This document shows, piece after piece, positions 2,432 to 13,091 of a stretch of 64,000 bases of DNA. The stretch's first letter is position 1; each line of letters begins with the position of its first letter. The DNA lies in contig OX337229.1 of the NCBI GenBank assembly GCA_946965045.2, forward strand, positions 5,890,001 to 5,954,000. The letters run 5' to 3'. This stretch comes from Epithemia pelagica (taxonomy: Eukaryota > Protista > Bacillariophyta). Below the pieces are notes generated by a model. The model saw only the letters and a list, made by a program, of their open reading frames with translations, was not told the DNA's origin and made no database searches. Position numbers and translations under genes: made by a program.

Positions 2432-5400
2432 ATGGGGATCGACACGTTTGAAGACAATGATGAATTTGGAGACGATGATGATTTGTTTCAAAATGTCGAT
2501 TTGGATCAATGGGAAGCCCAGGCCTATCAGCAACGAATGAGTACGGGTAGTGCGACTCCAGGACCTTCCACCACCAAGAGAACCCGAACGGAGGAGCCTG
2601 CCACGGACCAAGAGCATTCCACCTCTCTGTCTCCCAGTAGTAGTATAGGTGCTGCTACAGGGAGTGCTGCCATTCCGCAACAAGAACAACAACAAGAAGA
2701 ACCTTTGACAAAACGATCCAAGTCCACCACAAGACGAGAAGATCACCAGGTATTATTCGACGACAACATTAACGACACGGACGAGAAGGACGATTCCTAC
2801 CATGCCGTCTTGAACGAGTATTTTGGCTATACCAAGTTTCGACCGGGACAGTGGTCGGTTCTGCGAGCCATTGTCGAGGAACAACGCGATGCGGCCGTCT
2901 TTTGGAGTACGGGCAAGGGAAAATCCCTGTGTTTTCAAATTCCAGCCCTCCTTCCCAACAACGACGACCAGAACAACGAACAGGGACGGGTCGTGGTGGT
3001 CATTTCTCCCCTCATTTCTCTCATGCAAGATCAAGTGGACAAACTCAATGGACTCTGCATGGGCAGCGACCAAAGTAATAATACGAAGGTGGCCAATTAT
3101 TTGGGATCGGGACAAACCGATGACTCGGTTTACTCCCAGGCCATGCAAGGTGCCTATTCGCTCCTGTATGTGACACCGGAAACCTTTTGTTCCCATTCCT
3201 TTGTGCAACAATTGCAACAGATGCATCTTACTCGGAAACCCATTGCGCTCTTTGCTGTGGACGAAGCTCATTGTGTCAGTGAATGGGGTCATGATTTTCG
3301 ACCCGAATTTCGAGCCATTGGATCGACCCTCCGAGGCAGCAAGGCTGCTGGCGTCTTTGATCAAATTCCCATTTTGGCCTTGACGGCCACGGCCATTCCT
3401 CGAGTCCAACGAGATATTGTCGAGAGTTTGCACCTGCACAAAAATCCCTTGATTTCCGTCCAATCCTTTGATCGATCCAATTTGGTTTTGCAGGTTACCA
3501 AAAAGCCGCAGGGTGGTGTGCCGGCCGCCTTTCGGCCTCTCCTGGAACAATGGTCGTCCTCCAAGGCAGCGGACCGGCTGGTGAAACCCACCATTGTCTA
3601 TGCTCCCACACGGGCCCAAGTCGAAGAAATTGCCAGCTTTTTACAACACAATCTGCCATCGACCAACAGTACCAACCAAAAGCCGGTCACCATTGAGGCC
3701 TATCATGCCGGCATGACGCCGCAAGATCGGCATCGAATTCATACCAACTTTTTGACGGTACGTGTTTGCATATGATTTTGTGGTTGGTCGTTGGAATCCT
3801 TTCAATACAAGATCTTACTCTTGTTCTTGTTTTTTTTTCTAACATAGGGCCAAACCCAAGTGATTGTGGCAACGGTGGCCTTTGGGATGGGAATTGAGTA
3901 AGTCAATCGGTTGCATGTCTTTTTGAATCTTTGTCGTCGCTACGAGTTTCTCACAATAGGACTAAATCTGTCGCTTCGTGCAATGCTTGCGTGTTTCTCT
4001 GTTTATTATAGCAAACCCGACACTCGAAACGTGATTCATTACGGTCCTCCCAAAACCGTCGAAGAGTATTTCCAACAAATTGGTCGAGCGGGCCGTGATG
4101 GATTGGAATCCCATTGCCATTTGATGGTGAGTGAATCCGACTTTGATCGCTATCATACCGACTTTTACTTGGGACAATTGCAAGGACCTGCTCGAGAGGC
4201 AACAGTCCAAAGCATTCAGGCGTTGCGAGAGTATGCCCTCGACTCGGAAGGGTGTCGACGCAAACTCTTGCTGGATTACTTTGGTCAAGCCTCGCCCTTT
4301 GGAGAACGCTGTGGGACCTGCGACAATTGTCAGAAACAAGCCAAGTTTGGTGCCGATGCGACGCGGGACTTTGGACCCCTGGGTGCCCGTCTCGTCTTGT
4401 GTGCGGTCGATTCCTTAAAGTCTCAGGGCATGACTCCACTTGTCAAGGTCATGACGGGCAAGCCCGTCGAAGACTATCGATACAGCGCCCCCATAAACAC
4501 GGCCACCAAGGCTATGGAGAAGTGGGCCCACCAGGTTCCAAAAAATTACCCCAAACAAGCCTATCTGAAAGAACTGATTTCGACCCTCGTTAGCAAAGGG
4601 TACATTTCCGAATCCACGAAACATGCAACTGTGGGAGGCAATTACCAAACCAGTTGGACGGCCTACGAACTGACACGGTATGGTCGACAGGCGTTGTACA
4701 ACACCTCAACGCCCATTCACCTTGCCGTGCCGGATACGGTTCGTCAGGTGGAACAAAAAGAAGAAGAACGACGACAAAAAGTCTTGGCCAAACTGGAAGA
4801 ACGAGGCATTTCTCGCGACAAGGTTCCCTTGGAGGAAGCCAAAACGGGCGATGGCGAAGTGTTGCGGGCCTACGAGAAGTGGTTTTCCTATTCGGAGAAC
4901 TGTTCCAATCCAGACCGGAAAGCTCAATTGCAGAAACTCAGATCTACCATTGAGCAATGGCGGTCCTCGACAGCCTTTCGACACCGCATGGCGCCAGGAT
5001 CCGTGTTGGCCGATCACAAACTCTTTGCCTTGGCCTACACGCAAGCAACTCTGCCACGAGGGCAACACTTGGATGCTCCGGCTCTAGTGGCGACAGGAAT
5101 CCGAAGCAAGGAATTACCCGCCTTGGTGGATCGAATTGGTGAGTAAGCAGTGGCAACGTGTGTGACCCTTCTAGGTAGTTGGTTTCATTGAAACATCAGC
5201 AGTCTCACATTTTTATCCTTGTTTCGTTGCAGCACAATGGGTTGAAGAGGCGCAGCCTGCTTTGTCAACCAACGAAGGAACAGGAGATGAGCCACAAATG
5301 GTGTTCTCCTCAAATATTCAACAACCGAAATGGAAATATGCAATTTACAAACCTCAAAAGAAAACTGGAATTCCTGCTTGGGAGGCTTCTTATCGTCGTT

Positions 5401-5813
5401 TTGCAGCGGGCGAAAGCCCGGAAGCCATTGCTATGAATCCTGCCAGTGGAAGACCCATCCAAGCCATGACAGTCGTCAGTCACATTTTTGACGCCATGCT
5501 TCAAGGTTACGAGGTGGATGCCCGTCGTCTTGTCAAACTCTCGCCCCCTCCCAACGAAGGCGAGTGGCAACGGCTGGAACAAGCCGAAGCAACGACTGGT
5601 ATGAATGTGGCAGGGGACCCCGATACATCGGGCATGAACAATGAAAAGTTCTTGGTAACGGACTTCTTGAAACCAATTGTGGATTCTGCGAGCAAGGAAT
5701 ACAAAGAACGTTCGGAAGAGGAACGCAAGGAATTCTTCTTTTGGTGCGGAAAGGTGAAATGGTACATGCATTTCAAGAGACTGGGCTATACACCCACCTT
5801 TACATCGGTTTGA
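2432..5813 (+). CDS. RecQ family DNA helicase (WRN-like: helicase, RQC zinc, HRDC-like and C-terminal HTH), 4 exons
   Basis: Motifs STGKGKSLCFQIP, AVDEAHCVSEWGHDFRPEF, ALTATA, VIVATVAFGMGIDKPD, YFQQIGRAGRDG, and CRRKLLL..CGTCDNC. Exons 2432-3757, 3848-3897, 4012-5138 and 5233-5813 have GT-AG ends and join in frame. The start could be upstream at 2024. Confidence 0.93.
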
Positions 5814-5945: not shown

Positions 5946-8900
5946 TCATTTTCTAGCAGGTGATCCCCCCGGGACGGTGCTTTGTCGGGCAGCGGACGGA
6001 GTTCTCGAGGATTGGTTTTGTGGTGGGACAAATACATGCATTGCCGACTGAGCACGACCATCGGCTCGGACGGCAGACGGCGGGTACGGGTTGCTCGTCG
6101 AACGTTGGGCATGATTTGTTTGTGGGGTTGAGATTTGTCCAACCGACATTGCGGTTGGCGTGGGTCGAGTGGAGGTCACAGGTGCACTGTGCTGTCGTGC
6201 TACGGGGGCCATGGCAGATGATGGTGGCGAGCGAGATGGTCCACTTGACGATGCGGCAGCAGCAGCAGCAGCTTGTTGCTGTGCTTGATTGGCAAGGAAG
6301 CGATCGGATGCATCTAAAAATTGGAGCGGCCACATTTCCGTGCGACCACCAGTCCAGCTCGATGCAACCGACGATTGGACCGACTGCATGTGTGAGGGAT
6401 GGCTGTGTGCAATATTTGGGGAAGCGCCATCTGTTATTCCAGGAATAACACTTGGGCCACTTTGGAGTTTCTTTCTTGCTGAAGACATGGCACTGAAGGT
6501 TCGTCTTTTCCCGACAGTGGGTTCCGCCGACATGCTACTACTGCCATGGAGAAACCCAAGGTTGTCAACATCCGCGGCTGATGTTGTTACTTCGATATTA
6601 TCGCTTGGAACAATGGTCACAAGAACACTTGGTTTCTTACTTTCGGTACCTGTTTTCTCGGTTTTGTCTTTTGCATCACTCCCGATTATTTCATGCCGGA
6701 CATCAAGCGCGTATGATTCTGGGAATGTTACCGTGAAGGTCTCTCGTTGTCTCCTTTCCACCTTCTTCGCTTCCGTCCCCAATGACGAATCGTTGCGGGT
6801 GAGGATCTGCCAGTGTTCTTTGCAACTTTTGGAGGCACGGGGAAAACATTGACTGGCTTGAGGTTGTCTCGTGACAGTAACTAAGTCTTGTAGTCCACTA
6901 AGAGCACGCGAAGCTAGAGCCCAGTTGGTGCCAAAACGCAAAACGGTCTTCTTCAATAGGACTTCTTCTCTTGGAGTCCACGGGATAATTTGATCCTTGG
7001 AAGTGGGTGGAAGTTTGACACCCATAGGAAGAGTGACTCCAACGCTGGGACGTGGTGGAGCTGTTGCTGTCATACCTGAAGGCAGGTACAGAAACCCCGA
7101 GTTAAATGGTCCGAAATCCACACGACATGGAGACGATAGTGATCGACGTAGGTCAGAACTTTGTGCATGTGAAACTTCAATGGCCTCGTCTCCTGTTTTC
7201 GAATCTCTACTCTTTAGTCGTTTTACAACGCTTGTCCACAGTGCCGGGTCGCCCTGGAAATCGTTCCTAAAAATCTGAGAACGACCGAGGGGCTTTGAAA
7301 CAGCAAGCGGAAGACCAGGTCCTGACTCGTATGCACCCCCTGCTTGCCAACACAGACGAGACAATCTATGTGATAACTTGTTTCTCAACCGAACAGCAGC
7401 AGCTCGAAAAGGAGCGGCATCAAAGAGCGTAGCACCATGTCCATACTGACGGGAAGCTGCAATGAGCCGGCTGCGATGCAAGTCTTTCGTTTTTGAAGCA
7501 TTTCCGGAATTACCGAAAACAGCCATGGCAGCAGGCCTAGCAGGGTTTTGGTCTACACCACTTAAGGGTCTTGCAACAATAGATGTCTCTCTCGACGGAT
7601 CTTGGAACGCGTTTTTCTTTTGTCGGTCCCCTGATTCTACCCCATTTGACCCATACAACCCATTGCTAGCCGGATGGTAATGATTTGCAACAGGATGTGC
7701 CCATGGGGCGACAACATTGTTGAGATTGGGATGAGAACGGCCAGGTTGATAGACAGGCATACCCATTTGTCCACGCTGACGTCTTCGAGCAATGAAAAGA
7801 ATTAACGAGTTCGAGGCCCCTCTCGCATGGGAATCCAAATGTCGGCTTTCCTCGCTTTCTGAGTGGTCAATCGGATGAGCCCCAGCCTCAAAGTCGTCCA
7901 GTACGGCACTGCTGTTCGGGCGACTCTCAGCTAAGATCTGATTGGAGAAAACAGCCGAATCACGTGGCAATGGAATCGCCCCAATTCCGGCAAGCCCGTA
8001 ATCATCGGTAAGATCAAGAAGTACCGCAGCAGCGTCGTTCTTCAAAGAGTTCTCCTCTGTCACCAGTGGAGGATCATGAGCCGTCACTGAGGTATCCATG
8101 AACTCTCCACCAGCCAGCTTGAGTTTCTTCACTGGAAGCCCATCTATCAACGGTCGAACTCGTTTGTTACGTGATTCTCTTGAGATCGGAGACGGAACAC
8201 TTTCTGGTGCCACAACAGCGGACTCGAGCAATCGCGGAAAGATAGGAGGAAAGTACACAAGTAGCTCCATTCCTTGACTCCCTTCGCTGGAAAGTAGTTT
8301 GTTTGACAATAGAAATGAAGACGCGTACACGTTGTGACTGATATCCGACAGAGCGGGGAATGCCGAATCGTCGTATTCCAGTAGACCTCCGGCAAGGGCT
8401 TCTACCGTGGGTTCCTTCTCCTCTTTTTCAGCGACACTGACAGTCTCACTTCCAGACATTTCTTGCCATCCAACGGGTTGATGAGAAAGTGGCACAACCA
8501 GCTTTTCAGACGGTTGTCCTTCATCACCTTCGACGTGCGTGTCAAGGCGTCGTGCAAATTGTGCCACTGGCGAAACGTTCCAACCAGAGGAAAACTCAAC
8601 ATCAAAGTCGTTTGGAAATGGCGGCACAGAGCTTGTACACTTTATACAGGAATCCACCAAATGAAACGAGAATGCCGACGATTCCCCTTCACTCTTGGAC
8701 AAATTCTTCATTATGGACACTTGGGATTCGACAGTAAGGGACCCAGAAGAAGACGGGAGAAACAGTGGCCCGGAGCTCCTCCCAAACAAAGGCCGACATG
8801 ACAACTCATTGCAAAGCACTTTCTCTAGATTTTCGTTGCTCCACGCAAAGAGACCTTTCCCGGGAAACAGGTGTAATCCTTCGGAGGAACCTGAGCTGAT

Positions 8901-11900
8901 CCAGTTGTTGTAGACAACCGACTCTTCAGAAGAACGAAGATTTTGAGGTGGTTCCAAAATACCAAAGGCATTGACTGGCCACGGCAATTTGAAGTCCTTC
9001 ATCGATGCATGAGTCCCATTGTCTGAATTGGTAACACAAAAGTTCTCTTCGCACGAATTCTGGGAAATGAGACGAAGCACACGACATTCTCCTTGTTGCT
9101 GCTCATTGGCAAACGAAACACGCGAAAACAGTGACCGCATCAAAAGGTCTCCCCGTCCACTCCAGTCCTCGTCAACCACCACCACCAAGTTTGCCGATTC
9201 TACGCCAAGGCCACCATGATTGCCAGCGACTGCAATGGGCGAAGCAACCACGACATTCACCATCCGTGAGGATTCTGAAATACGATCATTGAATCGAGAA
9301 AGGACACGCTGTGTCGCTAGCCACGCAGCAGTGCTCCCATTGCGGTGAATCGCACCATGGTAGCTCAACAGTACTTCGTGGCAGACACCCAGAGCTCCAA
9401 GCAGAAGGGACACCAACAGCTGTACTTCCGGCAAAACTGCAAGAATGGCTACCTTGATCGGCCCATCCGATTGCGACTCTTTCTCCGAGGCTGCTCGTTG
9501 GGGAATTTCGGCTGATTCGTGGATTTCTGGTTCCAACGTGACGCCCCCATCCTGCACGAGAATTCGAGACAGTTCCCGAAACTTTCCCGAGCCCTTCAAT
9601 ATGAAGGATGCCAGTTCCGCGTCGGGTTGAGAGCTTGTGGATTTTTCGAGCGTAGAAAAGGAATAATCCAATAGCTGTTGTCGCACCGGGAAGGAATCCA
9701 AGACACTTTGCGCATCCGCGTGTGTGCAAATCCTTCGCAACCGCATGAGAGCTTCGGCAATGCCCCGAAAGGCAAACTGGACCGTATCCACTTCCAAGCG
9801 TCGAGAAAGCGCTGTTTTGACGCTATTGCAGCAATATTCGTACGACGTCCGTTGCGTCGGTGTCATGTCACAGAGAACAATCTCGACTTGTGGTGTGACC
9901 TTGCTTTCGCTTACCAACGTGTAGGTTGTCATGTCGAGCATTTTACAAAACAAGCCTCGCACTCGAAGAAACTTGGAAGAGGTTCCGTCCCCACCACTCG
10001 TCGTATCGGCGGAGCGCTTGATATGACGACGAGCCCAGCCTAAAAGATTCTTTTTGGAAAATTTCCATTCGGTCGAAAAGAGTGCCGATCCATACAAAAA
10101 GGCGGCCCGTAAGGACAAATGTTCCAGTACCATTCGATCCGAGAAGCCGTCCAAGAGACCCAACAAATCCATCGAGCTGAAATGGTCCACAACGATGCGT
10201 CGAGCGTTGGACTTGAACACGAGCGAAACGATTCGTTCCCACCAATCGGTCGAGGCCAGCTCCTTGGGTGCCGACATGGACAGCAAGGAATGGCTGGAAT
10301 TCTCATGGGTATCCAGGTAGGTTGGGGGCCGCGATCCACGAAATCCTACCGGATACCGCGAGTCTACCACAATGGTTTGGAATTGTGAGAGGACGTCCTC
10401 GGTCATGGTTTTCAAATCACTGAAACTGCAAATGACCACGAGGGAGGACGTGGTCGTTCGTGCGGCGGCGGCCAAGGAGGAGGATAGTTTGGCCGACATG
10501 GGTACCGGAGAAACGCCTTCAAAGTAGTGGAGTTCATTCAACCACTTGACCAAACTGTCAGCGGAACACACTACGAGCTGTGGACCCAAACTCTTGTATT
10601 TCCAGAGAATCGCACACGTGCTAAAGGTTTTTCCCGAAGAGACGGGACCGGACAAGAGACATCCCACTGAATTCTTTTTCCAAAGGTCTTCCATAAAGCC
10701 AACTCCCGTGGCCTCGTGCGCAAAAAAGTCCACTCCGTACGATTTACTGGGTTTGGGTTCGGCCTGTTTGACCGCCAAAAGCAAGGGAATCAAATGGTCG
10801 AGCGTGTCGGAAATCTCATCCAGGTCTACATGTCTCTTTTCGGGAGACGACGATGTGGATACCACTGGAGCACTCGTTTCCGTAGTGTTGGTGTCGTCCG
10901 CAGTGTGGGTCTCTTTGGTGGGTGTTGTCGTTGTTGTGGTTGTTGTTGTTGCCTTTGTGGTCAGTTCCACAGGACGGTTCCCTTCCTTGGTCTCCTCCTC
11001 GGCGTCTCGTGTCGAGTCTCCCCGAAGAACGTCGTCGTCAGGATTGTCTCCCGTTTCTGGATCCTGATGCAGGGACCAAAATTGGGACACGAAGGAGGTA
11101 CACGTTTTGGCAATGTCACGCAACGTGTCCTCATTCTGGGAACGGTCCTCCTCTTCCTCCTCCAAGGCTGCAAATTTTCGCTTGCCATCCTCCGGTTCCT
11201 CGGTGTTGGTGGTGTTGGTTGTCGAGGGCAGTGCTGGTGATTCGGCCGGCATGGGACTCGTAGTAGTAGCAGTCGTACGATCTGGTATCGATTCCACGAC
11301 GGCGGTAGGGATTGCTGGTTCTTTTGTGGTTGTTGTTGTTTCGTCTTCTTCTTGTGGTGGTTGGGGAACCGGTTCGACGGATGCTGTTGTTGTCGAAACG
11401 ACTGTGGAGTGGACGACGCTTTGTGCCACGGCACGGGCCGTACAGAGTTTCCATTTGCGTTCTTCGATAAAATCAGTGGCCAGCCATCGCATTTCTTCCA
11501 AGAGGACATCCCACTGCGTGCGACGCCGTTGCGGCAGTCGCGGTGGAGGACTGACACCGTGCGTGCAAAAGTCCCGCACCCAGTCCGGACGATTCCTTGT
11601 CGTGGTGGTGGTACTGGTCGTCCCAGACGAGGAGTGCGGCGCTTCGGATCGAGTGTGCCGTTGTTGCGCCAGTTGGACGAGTTTGGTTTCCACTCGTTGG
11701 CGTCGTTCCCGGAGCGCAACGGCTTCGGGAAGGACCACCACGGGTGGTGTCGGACGTCGCATGGCAAGTCCCAAAATATTGTGGGGTGGAATTCCTCGAG
11801 GAGGAGGTGGTGCTGGTTTGGCGGAAGCTCGTGCCAGGGATGCGGAGGTCAAAAGACCCTGGGATGATGATTGCTGAGTTGCTGCTGATGGGTGTGGTGG

Positions 11901-13091
11901 TTGTGCCATGGGTTGTCGATGATGATGAAGTGCCTTCTGGCCACTCGCTCGTCCTCCTTGGGGTGGTACGACCGGGATGGGTACCGTCGCCGACAATTTT
12001 TTGGAGGCACCCGATGGTACAGGGTTTGGAGCAATGGAGGGTACCATTGCCGTACTCGAAACTGGTGTGGGAAGACTGGCGGCGGTTGGTACGACGGGAG
12101 CGGCTCCACTGGAAATGACGGGTGTTGCTTCTGGTGCTGTTGGTGGAACTGGCAGGGGCGCTGTTGGTTCCAGTGGAGTGGTCGTCGTTGCTCCTCCGTC
12201 CGTGACCGGTTGGGTGCTGGAATTGCGCGGCGCCAAGGAAGAGAGTGCGGCATTCATGCGTTTCCCCACGCTCGATCCCCGTCGCAGCGACAATTGAGTG
12301 CGTGAATGTTGAAATGGTTCGTCTTCGGCCACGCGCGAATTTTTGCGGGCCAAGGAGGAAATTTCGCGCCCCAGGGCCATCCATCGCACACGTTCCTCCT
12401 CTCCCGTTTCCGTGGCTCGTGTGGGATGGTCTTTATTGCATTGTTCCAGTCGTTGGTTCGCCGCCACTCGACCCTGATGCAATCGCTCCAACAATAATGT
12501 TCGGTGGGCAATCAAGTGGCGCATGCGTCGTTCTCGCGAGGGTTGTTTGGCATGGGATTTTTCACTCAAGACAGTCGCAGCAGCAGCAGCAGTTCCGGAT
12601 TTTTCCGAGACTGTGGTGGTCGGTGATCTCCGTGGAATCAATGCCGCAGGTTGAGACAATGTTGTTGGTCGTGTTTCCTCTTTTTCTTCTTCTTCGTTTT
12701 GTGGTTGTTGTTCATGGAGAGGCCCTTTGGCAGGCGATTCGGGAGTGGCATGATCGTTTCCCTCCGAGGATTTGTGGGTTCCAATTCGTTTGTGGGTAGT
12801 AGCTTCTTTGAATTGTTCCGATGTTGCTTCCATTTGTTGTGAATTGGTGTTTGGTGGTGGTTCTAATTCATCGTTTGGGGCTTGAGTGGCTGTCGTCGTG
12901 ATGGTGGACGTTGTTGCAGTATCCTTCTCAGGTTCCTCCTGCTTTGGCTCATTCTTGTTGGTAGTTTTCGAGCCCGGTGCTGTTTGGTCGCGCCTGGGAC
13001 GACGCGGTGGAGGTACTTCGGGTTCGATCCGCTTGCGCTTGCTGCTCCGTGGACCCGCCATTGCCATGCAATTAGTCCACCCAAAATTCAA
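5946..13091 (-). CDS. p400/SWR1/EAF1-like protein: HSA domain + degenerate Snf2 ATPase + SANT/Myb domain
   Basis: 2381-aa single ORF. HSA motif RRRTQWDVLLEEMRWLATDFIEERKWK; Snf2-like blocks GPVSSGKTF, GPQLVVC, LMRLRRICTH, SGKFREL and GGLGVESANLVVVVDEDW; SANT motif PWTPREEVLLKKTVLRFGTNWALAS. Confidence 0.85.
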   Translation of the reverse strand: MNFGWTNCMAMAGPRSSKRKRIEPEVPPPRRPRRDQTAPGSKTTNKNEPKQEEPEKDTATTSTITTTATQAPNDELEPPPNTNSQQMEATSEQFKEATTHKRIGTHKSSEGNDHATPESPAKGPLHEQQPQNEEEEKEETRPTTLSQPAALIPRRSPTTTVSEKSGTAAAAATVLSEKSHAKQPSRERRMRHLIAHRTLLLERLHQGRVAANQRLEQCNKDHPTRATETGEEERVRWMALGREISSLARKNSRVAEDEPFQHSRTQLSLRRGSSVGKRMNAALSSLAPRNSSTQPVTDGGATTTTPLEPTAPLPVPPTAPEATPVISSGAAPVVPTAASLPTPVSSTAMVPSIAPNPVPSGASKKLSATVPIPVVPPQGGRASGQKALHHHRQPMAQPPHPSAATQQSSSQGLLTSASLARASAKPAPPPPRGIPPHNILGLAMRRPTPPVVVLPEAVALRERRQRVETKLVQLAQQRHTRSEAPHSSSGTTSTTTTTRNRPDWVRDFCTHGVSPPPRLPQRRRTQWDVLLEEMRWLATDFIEERKWKLCTARAVAQSVVHSTVVSTTTASVEPVPQPPQEEDETTTTTKEPAIPTAVVESIPDRTTATTTSPMPAESPALPSTTNTTNTEEPEDGKRKFAALEEEEEDRSQNEDTLRDIAKTCTSFVSQFWSLHQDPETGDNPDDDVLRGDSTRDAEEETKEGNRPVELTTKATTTTTTTTTPTKETHTADDTNTTETSAPVVSTSSSPEKRHVDLDEISDTLDHLIPLLLAVKQAEPKPSKSYGVDFFAHEATGVGFMEDLWKKNSVGCLLSGPVSSGKTFSTCAILWKYKSLGPQLVVCSADSLVKWLNELHYFEGVSPVPMSAKLSSSLAAAARTTTSSLVVICSFSDLKTMTEDVLSQFQTIVVDSRYPVGFRGSRPPTYLDTHENSSHSLLSMSAPKELASTDWWERIVSLVFKSNARRIVVDHFSSMDLLGLLDGFSDRMVLEHLSLRAAFLYGSALFSTEWKFSKKNLLGWARRHIKRSADTTSGGDGTSSKFLRVRGLFCKMLDMTTYTLVSESKVTPQVEIVLCDMTPTQRTSYEYCCNSVKTALSRRLEVDTVQFAFRGIAEALMRLRRICTHADAQSVLDSFPVRQQLLDYSFSTLEKSTSSQPDAELASFILKGSGKFRELSRILVQDGGVTLEPEIHESAEIPQRAASEKESQSDGPIKVAILAVLPEVQLLVSLLLGALGVCHEVLLSYHGAIHRNGSTAAWLATQRVLSRFNDRISESSRMVNVVVASPIAVAGNHGGLGVESANLVVVVDEDWSGRGDLLMRSLFSRVSFANEQQQGECRVLRLISQNSCEENFCVTNSDNGTHASMKDFKLPWPVNAFGILEPPQNLRSSEESVVYNNWISSGSSEGLHLFPGKGLFAWSNENLEKVLCNELSCRPLFGRSSGPLFLPSSSGSLTVESQVSIMKNLSKSEGESSAFSFHLVDSCIKCTSSVPPFPNDFDVEFSSGWNVSPVAQFARRLDTHVEGDEGQPSEKLVVPLSHQPVGWQEMSGSETVSVAEKEEKEPTVEALAGGLLEYDDSAFPALSDISHNVYASSFLLSNKLLSSEGSQGMELLVYFPPIFPRLLESAVVAPESVPSPISRESRNKRVRPLIDGLPVKKLKLAGGEFMDTSVTAHDPPLVTEENSLKNDAAAVLLDLTDDYGLAGIGAIPLPRDSAVFSNQILAESRPNSSAVLDDFEAGAHPIDHSESEESRHLDSHARGASNSLILFIARRRQRGQMGMPVYQPGRSHPNLNNVVAPWAHPVANHYHPASNGLYGSNGVESGDRQKKNAFQDPSRETSIVARPLSGVDQNPARPAAMAVFGNSGNASKTKDLHRSRLIAASRQYGHGATLFDAAPFRAAAVRLRNKLSHRLSRLCWQAGGAYESGPGLPLAVSKPLGRSQIFRNDFQGDPALWTSVVKRLKSRDSKTGDEAIEVSHAQSSDLRRSLSSPCRVDFGPFNSGFLYLPSGMTATAPPRPSVGVTLPMGVKLPPTSKDQIIPWTPREEVLLKKTVLRFGTNWALASRALSGLQDLVTVTRQPQASQCFPRASKSCKEHWQILTRNDSSLGTEAKKVERRQRETFTVTFPESYALDVRHEIIGSDAKDKTEKTGTESKKPSVLVTIVPSDNIEVTTSAADVDNLGFLHGSSSMSAEPTVGKRRTFSAMSSARKKLQSGPSVIPGITDGASPNIAHSHPSHMQSVQSSVASSWTGGRTEMWPLQFLDASDRFLANQAQQQAAAAAAASSSGPSRSPPSSAMAPVARQHSAPVTSTRPTPTAMSVGQISTPQTNHAQRSTSNPYPPSAVRADGRAQSAMHVFVPPQNQSSRTPSAARQSTVPGGSPARK

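Follow-up and report, generated by a model that had tools for sequence, protein, structure and literature searches.

The window analysed here, a stretch of 64,000 nucleotides from the diatom Epithemia pelagica (assembly GCA_946965045.2, contig OX337229.1, positions 5,890,001 to 5,954,000 of the forward strand), carries on its minus strand a gene that probably encodes the diatom platform subunit of the acetyltransferase complex NuA4, i.e., the equivalent of EAF1 and p400, in which a Snf2 module that does not hydrolyse ATP has been kept as a structural part or for contact with nucleosomes or DNA. One frame encodes, in this order, an HSA domain, a complete two-lobe Snf2 fold and a SANT/Myb domain. 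Over window positions 5946-13091 this frame is uninterrupted, and the list of open reading frames (ORFs) counts 2381 codons from a TTG; the first ATG, at 13067, gives a protein of 2373 amino acids encoded by a single exon of about 7.1 kb without stops, and residues are numbered from this methionine. Because the gene called in a 96%-identical relative (locus L005) begins at a methionine equivalent to residue 79, the true start is uncertain between residues 1 and 79. The gene is single-copy, as a search of its own genome with the Snf2-module profile matched only the gene itself. Its orthologues bear public names such as "predicted protein" (Phaeodactylum), "DNA binding protein" (Seminavis) and "HSA domain-containing protein" (Cyclotella). 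The preliminary description of this DNA had already placed HSA, Snf2-like blocks and SANT in one ORF of 2381 codons, an arrangement that Pfam and profile searches confirm, with coordinates right to within about 40 nucleotides. The principal features are as follows.

5946-13067, minus strand: coding sequence, a single exon of 2373 amino acids plus stop; the mechanically called ORF extends to the TTG at 13091.
11412-11534, minus strand: HSA domain of the p400/SRCAP/EAF1 type, residues 512-552 (Pfam E-value 1.3e-9).
9033-10742, minus strand: Snf2-type two-lobe ATPase fold that lacks the catalytic residues and a long inter-lobe insertion, residues 776-1345 (family profile, AlphaFold2, Foldseek, VIA-align and dN/dS, the ratio of non-synonymous to synonymous substitution rates).
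10626-10649, minus strand: motif I (Walker A) GPVSSGKT, residues 807-814, an intact G-x4-GKT that corresponds to DEMGLGKT of yeast Snf2.
10353-10370, minus strand: equivalent of motif II, VVDSRY, residues 900-905, with the Asp kept and the catalytic Glu replaced by Ser; it corresponds to IIDEGH of yeast Snf2.
10173-10205, minus strand: equivalent of motif III, residues 955-965, its likeness to TGTP lost (family alignment, and family member P0173 aligned to canonical SWR1).
9117-9173, minus strand: nearly invariant DEDWSGR block (residues 1299-1305), the counterpart of D.DWNP, followed by a degenerate motif VI (residues 1309-1317).
6801-6983, minus strand: SANT/Myb-like domain with a long loop ahead of the third helix, residues 2029-2089 (Pfam E-values 6e-4 to 9e-4, just under the cut-off for the single sequence).

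Profiles and a predicted model indicate that the Snf2 module is a real two-lobe fold. With the single sequence as query, Pfam places SNF2-rel_dom at residues 784-892 (E-value 6.5e-8, beyond the curated cut-off), and a phmmer search of the PDB matches yeast Snf2 over three segments in collinear order. The family profile of the Snf2 region, built as alignment A1, matches yeast Swr1 (1.9e-23), MtSnf2 (2.6e-19), SRCAP (2.8e-18), INO80 (about 1e-17) and EP400 (2.7e-10) in the PDB. An AlphaFold2 model of residues 760-1360, computed with the family alignment as input, shows two alpha/beta lobes with a mean predicted local distance difference test score of 76.5 and a predicted template modelling score of 0.77, and Foldseek relates this model to the motors of BRG1, Rad54, Mot1, CHD and ISWI at probability 1.0. 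The fold suspected in the preliminary description was thus recovered by PDB profile search, by structure prediction and by structural comparison; a feature search of the ESM Atlas returned generic Snf2 clusters only. Superposition with VIA-align gives Z-scores of 20.9 for INO80, 20.6 for EP400 in human TIP60, 20.0 for SRCAP and 19.9 for SWR1, with a root-mean-square deviation of 4.7 Å over 441 residues for EP400. Sequence and structure scores do not appear to single out a source subfamily: yeast Swr1, the best sequence match, leads the Snf2-type ATPases by only about 14 bits, EP400 scores low, and the structural Z-scores of INO80, EP400, ISW1, SRCAP and SWR1 are tied within one unit.

The fold is kept without the residues on which catalysis would depend. 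Alignment to yeast Snf2 bears out the three motif readings proposed earlier, GPVSSGKT, VVDSRY and LMRSLFSRV; the last aligns with motif VI of yeast Snf2, QDRAHRIGQ, and almost every consensus residue is gone. All retrieved family members were then aligned to the A1 profile, each count being given over the members that contain the region. The Asp of motif II is present in 128 of 128 members, and the catalytic Glu position holds Glu in none of them (0/128), being occupied by C, L, S, A, T, G or F; the residue that follows is Arg in 121 of 128. A carboxylate at or beside the catalytic position of motif II occurs in no family member aligned. The first arginine of motif VI is likewise never found (0/138) and is replaced by a hydrophobic residue in nearly all members, while the position of the second holds R or K in 122 of 138. 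Motif V retains its GGLG, and the D.DW block survives with invariant columns at D1299, D1301, W1302, S1303, G1304 and R1305, as does motif Ia (GPQLVVCS...W, with G828, C834 and W842 invariant). The early-branching group of P0173 has a near-canonical motif I, yet it has lost the Glu and motif VI in the same way. The loss of catalytic residues is family-wide and not local decay, so the case of orthologues with intact DEAH and motif VI, named in the preliminary description as counter-evidence, does not apply.

Judged from these motifs, the protein would not hydrolyse ATP at a useful rate. The Walker A signature GK[TS] is found in 35 of the 45 members with the region, and the Gln of the Q-motif in 31 of 43. 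Most family members may still bind nucleotide, as the P-loop, the Asp of motif II and the Gln of the Q-motif have largely survived. Nucleotide cannot, however, be needed for the conserved role, because the module persists in one monophyletic subclade in which the P-loop is gone. The sequences without Walker A GKT are P0016, P0020, P0022, P0023, P0024, P0060 and P0097 (and P0018), and they still carry DEDWSGR and the remaining fold.

Selection on the gene was estimated from a comparison with one relative, the 96%-identical L005. The dN/dS of the whole gene is 0.24; it is 0.14 for the Snf2 module (26 synonymous and 12 non-synonymous changes), 0.05 for HSA, 0.09 for the SANT region and 0.48 for the disordered N-terminal part of low complexity. 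Since its ratio is 0.14, the Snf2 module is maintained by purifying selection and is not decaying. When 1.84 billion representative proteins were searched with the A1 profile, 131 clusters scored E<1e-30, and virtually all of them belong to this family. Members occur in both pennate and centric diatoms. Among those with a name, a hypothetical protein of Epithemia clementina is closest (58-64% identity), and others come from Seminavis robusta, Phaeodactylum tricornutum (XP_002180298, partial), Cyclotella atomus and Attheya (an MMETSP transcript); complete MMETSP transcripts of orthologues in other diatoms provide the basis for expression. Proteins of diatom type were the only ones returned by a word search that started from the SANT/C-terminal region.

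The domains on either side of the Snf2 module point to a NuA4 or TIP60 platform. When searched against the PDB, the family HSA profile matches EP400 (1.4e-17), SRCAP (8e-13) and three EAF1 entries (3.7e-10 to 9e-6), and no other HSA proteins. The SANT profile built from orthologues matches Myb repeats (1.4e-11) and, among large proteins, EAF1 (5e-5). With the full-length family profile, EP400 is the top PDB match, along one collinear stretch that runs from HSA into the start of the ATPase. The Pfam search of the protein found no EP400_N domain.

The genomic context was surveyed as well. A six-frame search of the genome for HSA found three loci: the window gene, an SWR1 gene (L001) and a BRM/SNF2 gene (L002). 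The separate SWR1 whose existence the preliminary description had proposed to check is therefore present. It lies about 120 kb from the window gene on the same contig (G000:C2:6016000-6025999, minus strand) and is a canonical SWR1/SRCAP gene of several exons. Searched individually, its ATPase exons match SRCAP (5.5e-104) and yeast Swr1 (1e-80); its domains are intact, and about 240 residues of insertion separate the end of SNF2-rel_dom from Helicase_C. WW and F-box domains were found in its last ORF. SWR1 and the dead-motor gene are unusually close neighbours on one chromosome. The third locus (G000:C4:2897000-2906999) encodes a BRM/SNF2-type remodeller with HSA, Snf2, SnAC and bromodomain in at least four exons. 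Since the family's own HSA profile matches only the window gene and the SWR1 locus, this search leaves no second, ATPase-free EAF1 candidate in the genome. Genes for the expected partners are present, namely Epl1, two MYST acetyltransferases, DMAP1/Swc4, Tra1 (with FAT and PI3K-like domains) and RuvBL1/2.

One further property sets the Snf2 module apart. SWR1, INO80 and p400 carry between their lobes a long insertion that holds the RuvBL1/2 ring. Here the inter-lobe span measures about 46 residues from the C.H motif that closes lobe 1 to the SGK helix, plus about 45 from that helix to the strand of motif IV, and in the VIA-align superposition EP400 covers 975 residues where the model covers 588. 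Because this insertion is missing, the module is not simply a point-mutated p400, and that description was rejected.

The protein shares features with several known systems and differs from each of them. EAF1 has no ATPase, and p400 joins features of EAF1 and SWR1 (PMC4358907). The background offered in the preliminary description, that animal p400 carries HSA, ATPase and SANT and that EAF1 lacks the ATPase, omits plant PIE1, an SWR1 orthologue that also combines HSA, ATPase and SANT (PMC4358907). In Plasmodium, NuA4 and SWR1 are separate complexes, and EAF1 is very large, at 4.7 times the length of its yeast counterpart (PMC11036802). The diatom protein resembles vertebrate EP400 and Drosophila Domino-A, the platforms of TIP60, in the order of HSA, Snf2 and SANT and in the presence of a separate SWR1/SRCAP gene; EP400 is also the best PDB match of its HSA and superposes on its module at the Z-score given above. 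EP400, however, has canonical motifs and an insertion of several hundred residues for RuvBL1/2, whereas the diatom protein lacks the catalytic Glu, the first arginine finger and motif III, has a short inter-lobe span and shows no detectable EP400_N. With EAF1, the NuA4 platform of yeast and plants, it shares HSA followed by SANT, profiles of both domains that match EAF1 chains, and the position of sole such gene beside a separate SWR1. In yeast EAF1, HSA (355-393) and SANT (639-705) are separated by only about 245 residues, too few for an ATPase; the same interval of the diatom protein holds a Snf2 fold of 570 residues plus about 680 others. SWR1, SRCAP and PIE1 also bear HSA, yeast Swr1 is the best sequence match of the diatom module and PIE1 ends in SANT, but in these enzymes the motifs are intact and an insertion binds RuvBL; the diatom scaffold has neither feature. 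There is a parallel outside these families. Hda2 and Hda3 of the yeast HDA1 deacetylase complex (PF11496) contain non-catalytic Snf2-like domains that serve as scaffold and DNA binder. Their Snf2-derived fold, devoid of ATPase motifs, likewise acts within a histone-modifying complex as a structural or DNA-binding element. They belong to another family, however, and retain part of the fold where the diatom protein has both lobes; PF11496 has no match at E<=1 in the Pfam search of the latter.

Altogether, these findings suggest a model in which HSA would recruit actin and Arp4 together with a Swc4/Yaf9 module, while SANT and its conserved flanks would dock on Tra1. The dead motor would act as a rigid hub, as a grip on nucleosomal DNA for the acetyltransferase complex, or as both, and H2A.Z exchange would be left to the separate canonical SWR1. 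Motif Ia and GGLG contact DNA in active remodellers, and a DNA grip is plausible because both are retained. Because the insertion of SWR1 and p400 is missing, a NuA4-like complex without a RuvBL ring would be expected, and the complex would resemble yeast NuA4, which has no such ring, more than human TIP60. Of the interpretation first proposed, an intermediate pseudo-ATPase scaffold for a NuA4/TIP60-like complex, the p400-like domain order, the Snf2 fold, the family-wide degeneration and the separate SWR1 all stand, and the scaffold role is plausible on these grounds; the word "intermediate" is not supported as written, as ancestral retention and later capture of a Snf2 copy would both suit the data. 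Several considerations weigh against the NuA4 platform with a structural motor. The loss of hydrolysis is read from motifs. A nucleotide-dependent switch may exist, since the P-loop is intact in the Epithemia pelagica protein. No physical or predicted interaction with a NuA4 subunit was obtained, one pair having been modelled. Finally, the narrow lead of Swr1 and the low score of EP400 leave descent from a p400-like motor unestablished. The pair modelled was SANT with the C-terminal region (residues 1975-2265) against the kinase/FATC part of Tra1 (L006), and its score of 0.01 speaks neither for nor against binding.

The most serious competitor to this platform role is that the protein is a non-catalytic SWR1 paralogue which takes part in H2A.Z exchange or competes with its machinery; it might, for instance, be a regulator or decoy that binds nucleosomes and shares Arp4, actin, Swc4 and Yaf9. 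Yeast Swr1 is indeed the best PDB sequence match of the Snf2 module, the HSA profile reaches SRCAP as well (8e-13), only about 120 kb separates the window gene from canonical SWR1 on the contig that they share, and PIE1 demonstrates that an SWR1 orthologue can carry SANT (PMC4358907). However, HSA is nearer to EP400 than to SRCAP, SANT matches EAF1, and the module lacks the RuvBL1/2-holding insertion of all SWR1/INO80-class motors. Moreover, the genome would otherwise have no candidate for a NuA4 platform despite its Tra1, Epl1, MYST and Swc4 genes. We therefore regard a paralogue of this kind as unlikely.

It is less probable still that the Snf2 module remains an ATPase or translocase that works with unconventional residues. 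Family members have neither a carboxylate at or beside the catalytic position nor the first arginine finger, motif III is lost, and the remainder of the module persists in the subclade without a P-loop. An intact Walker A, here and in 35 of 45 members, and the invariant motif II Asp would nevertheless suit such an enzyme, and the Arg after the Glu position (121/128) and the second R/K of motif VI (122/138) could mark a remodelled active site. It is scarcely credible that the Snf2-like stretch represents a remnant in decay, or that the ORF is an annotation artefact or pseudogene. The single-sequence Pfam scores are weak (32 bits) and there are no RNA runs for the Epithemia pelagica genome, yet the frame is free of stops over 7.1 kb, dN/dS is 0.14 in the module and 0.24 overall, more than 130 clusters share the same blocks, complete transcripts exist in other diatoms, and the two-lobe model is confident. 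The pseudogene or artefact was rejected on dN/dS and conservation.

Two evolutionary routes to a NuA4 platform with a dead motor fit the data equally. Either an old p400-like architecture was retained and its motor then decayed, or a stramenopile-specific copy of a Snf2 module, perhaps from SWR1, entered an EAF1-like gene and afterwards decayed and lost its insertion. A broader proposal holds that the HSA-Snf2-SANT order did not arise in animals but is old and shared by at least stramenopiles and opisthokonts, that diatoms retain a stage at which the motor of the NuA4 platform was no longer needed as an enzyme but was indispensable as a structure, and that fungal and plant EAF1 is the end point of this path, with the motor deleted. 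This broader proposal is conceivable, though we would not expect it to hold. If it did, it would be natural evidence that the Snf2 module of NuA4/TIP60 platforms works without ATP hydrolysis. In the standard account, p400 arose in animals by fusion of EAF1 and SWR1, and the diatom gene bears on that account of its origin.

Whether the p400-type ATPase remodels inside TIP60/NuA4 is disputed. In vivo, Drosophila DOM-A/TIP60 does not exchange H2A.V, and the authors of one structural study contend that the human complex lacks this function (10.1101/2024.07.30.605802); other work reports exchange activity of TIP60 (PMC11578891). An algal lineage in which the fold is selected without its catalytic residues amounts to a natural experiment in this debate and suggests that a scaffold of this type can use its motor domain for structure alone. 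In full-text searches of the literature, no description was found of a diatom EAF1 or p400, or of a NuA4 platform whose Snf2 module is catalytically dead. An unannotated gene gains a testable identity, and Phaeodactylum is genetically tractable.

The order of branching within the family was examined with a FastTree tree, which is rough, is rooted on a single canonical SWR1 and shows order within the family only; p400 and DEAQ-type Snf2 proteins were omitted from it, as hmmalign placed only about 100 of their residues. The window protein adjoins Epithemia among the pennates, centric sequences stand further out, and P0171, P0173 and P0174 branch before all named diatoms. These three proteins (from L003, SRR29811053, and L004, SRR24908242) have HSA, a dead Snf2 module, SANT and a near-canonical motif I. 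In P0173, the HSA, the Snf2 region and the Myb/SANT match are arranged as in the window protein, and a search from this divergent member returned four proteins. The three sequences could extend the family beyond diatoms.

Several conserved blocks without known counterpart lie outside the three domains, at residues 181-200, 258-280, 1601-1620, 1681-1700, 1981-2020 and 2221-2260. The features located among them, by a conservation profile of 17 orthologues for the first two, are the following.

12228-12527, minus strand: two conserved N-terminal blocks in the low-complexity region, residues 181-200 and 258-280.
7008-7127, minus strand: conserved block ahead of SANT, residues 1981-2020.
6288-6407, minus strand: conserved C-terminal motif, residues 2221-2260, with H2223, S2225, H2226, M2245, W2246, P2247 and L2251 invariant.

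The C-terminal motif is a possible Tra1/TRRAP-docking segment. The block at residues 258-280 (window 12228-12296) is a strongly conserved short motif rich in R, G, S and K. Beyond the 3' end of the scaffold gene, two plus-strand ORFs (window 3911-5146 and 5262-5813) match the RecQ zinc-binding domain, the end of Helicase_C and HTH_40; these final exons belong to a RecQ-family helicase gene oriented convergently to the scaffold gene, and the same neighbours stand beside the gene in the 96%-identical relative.

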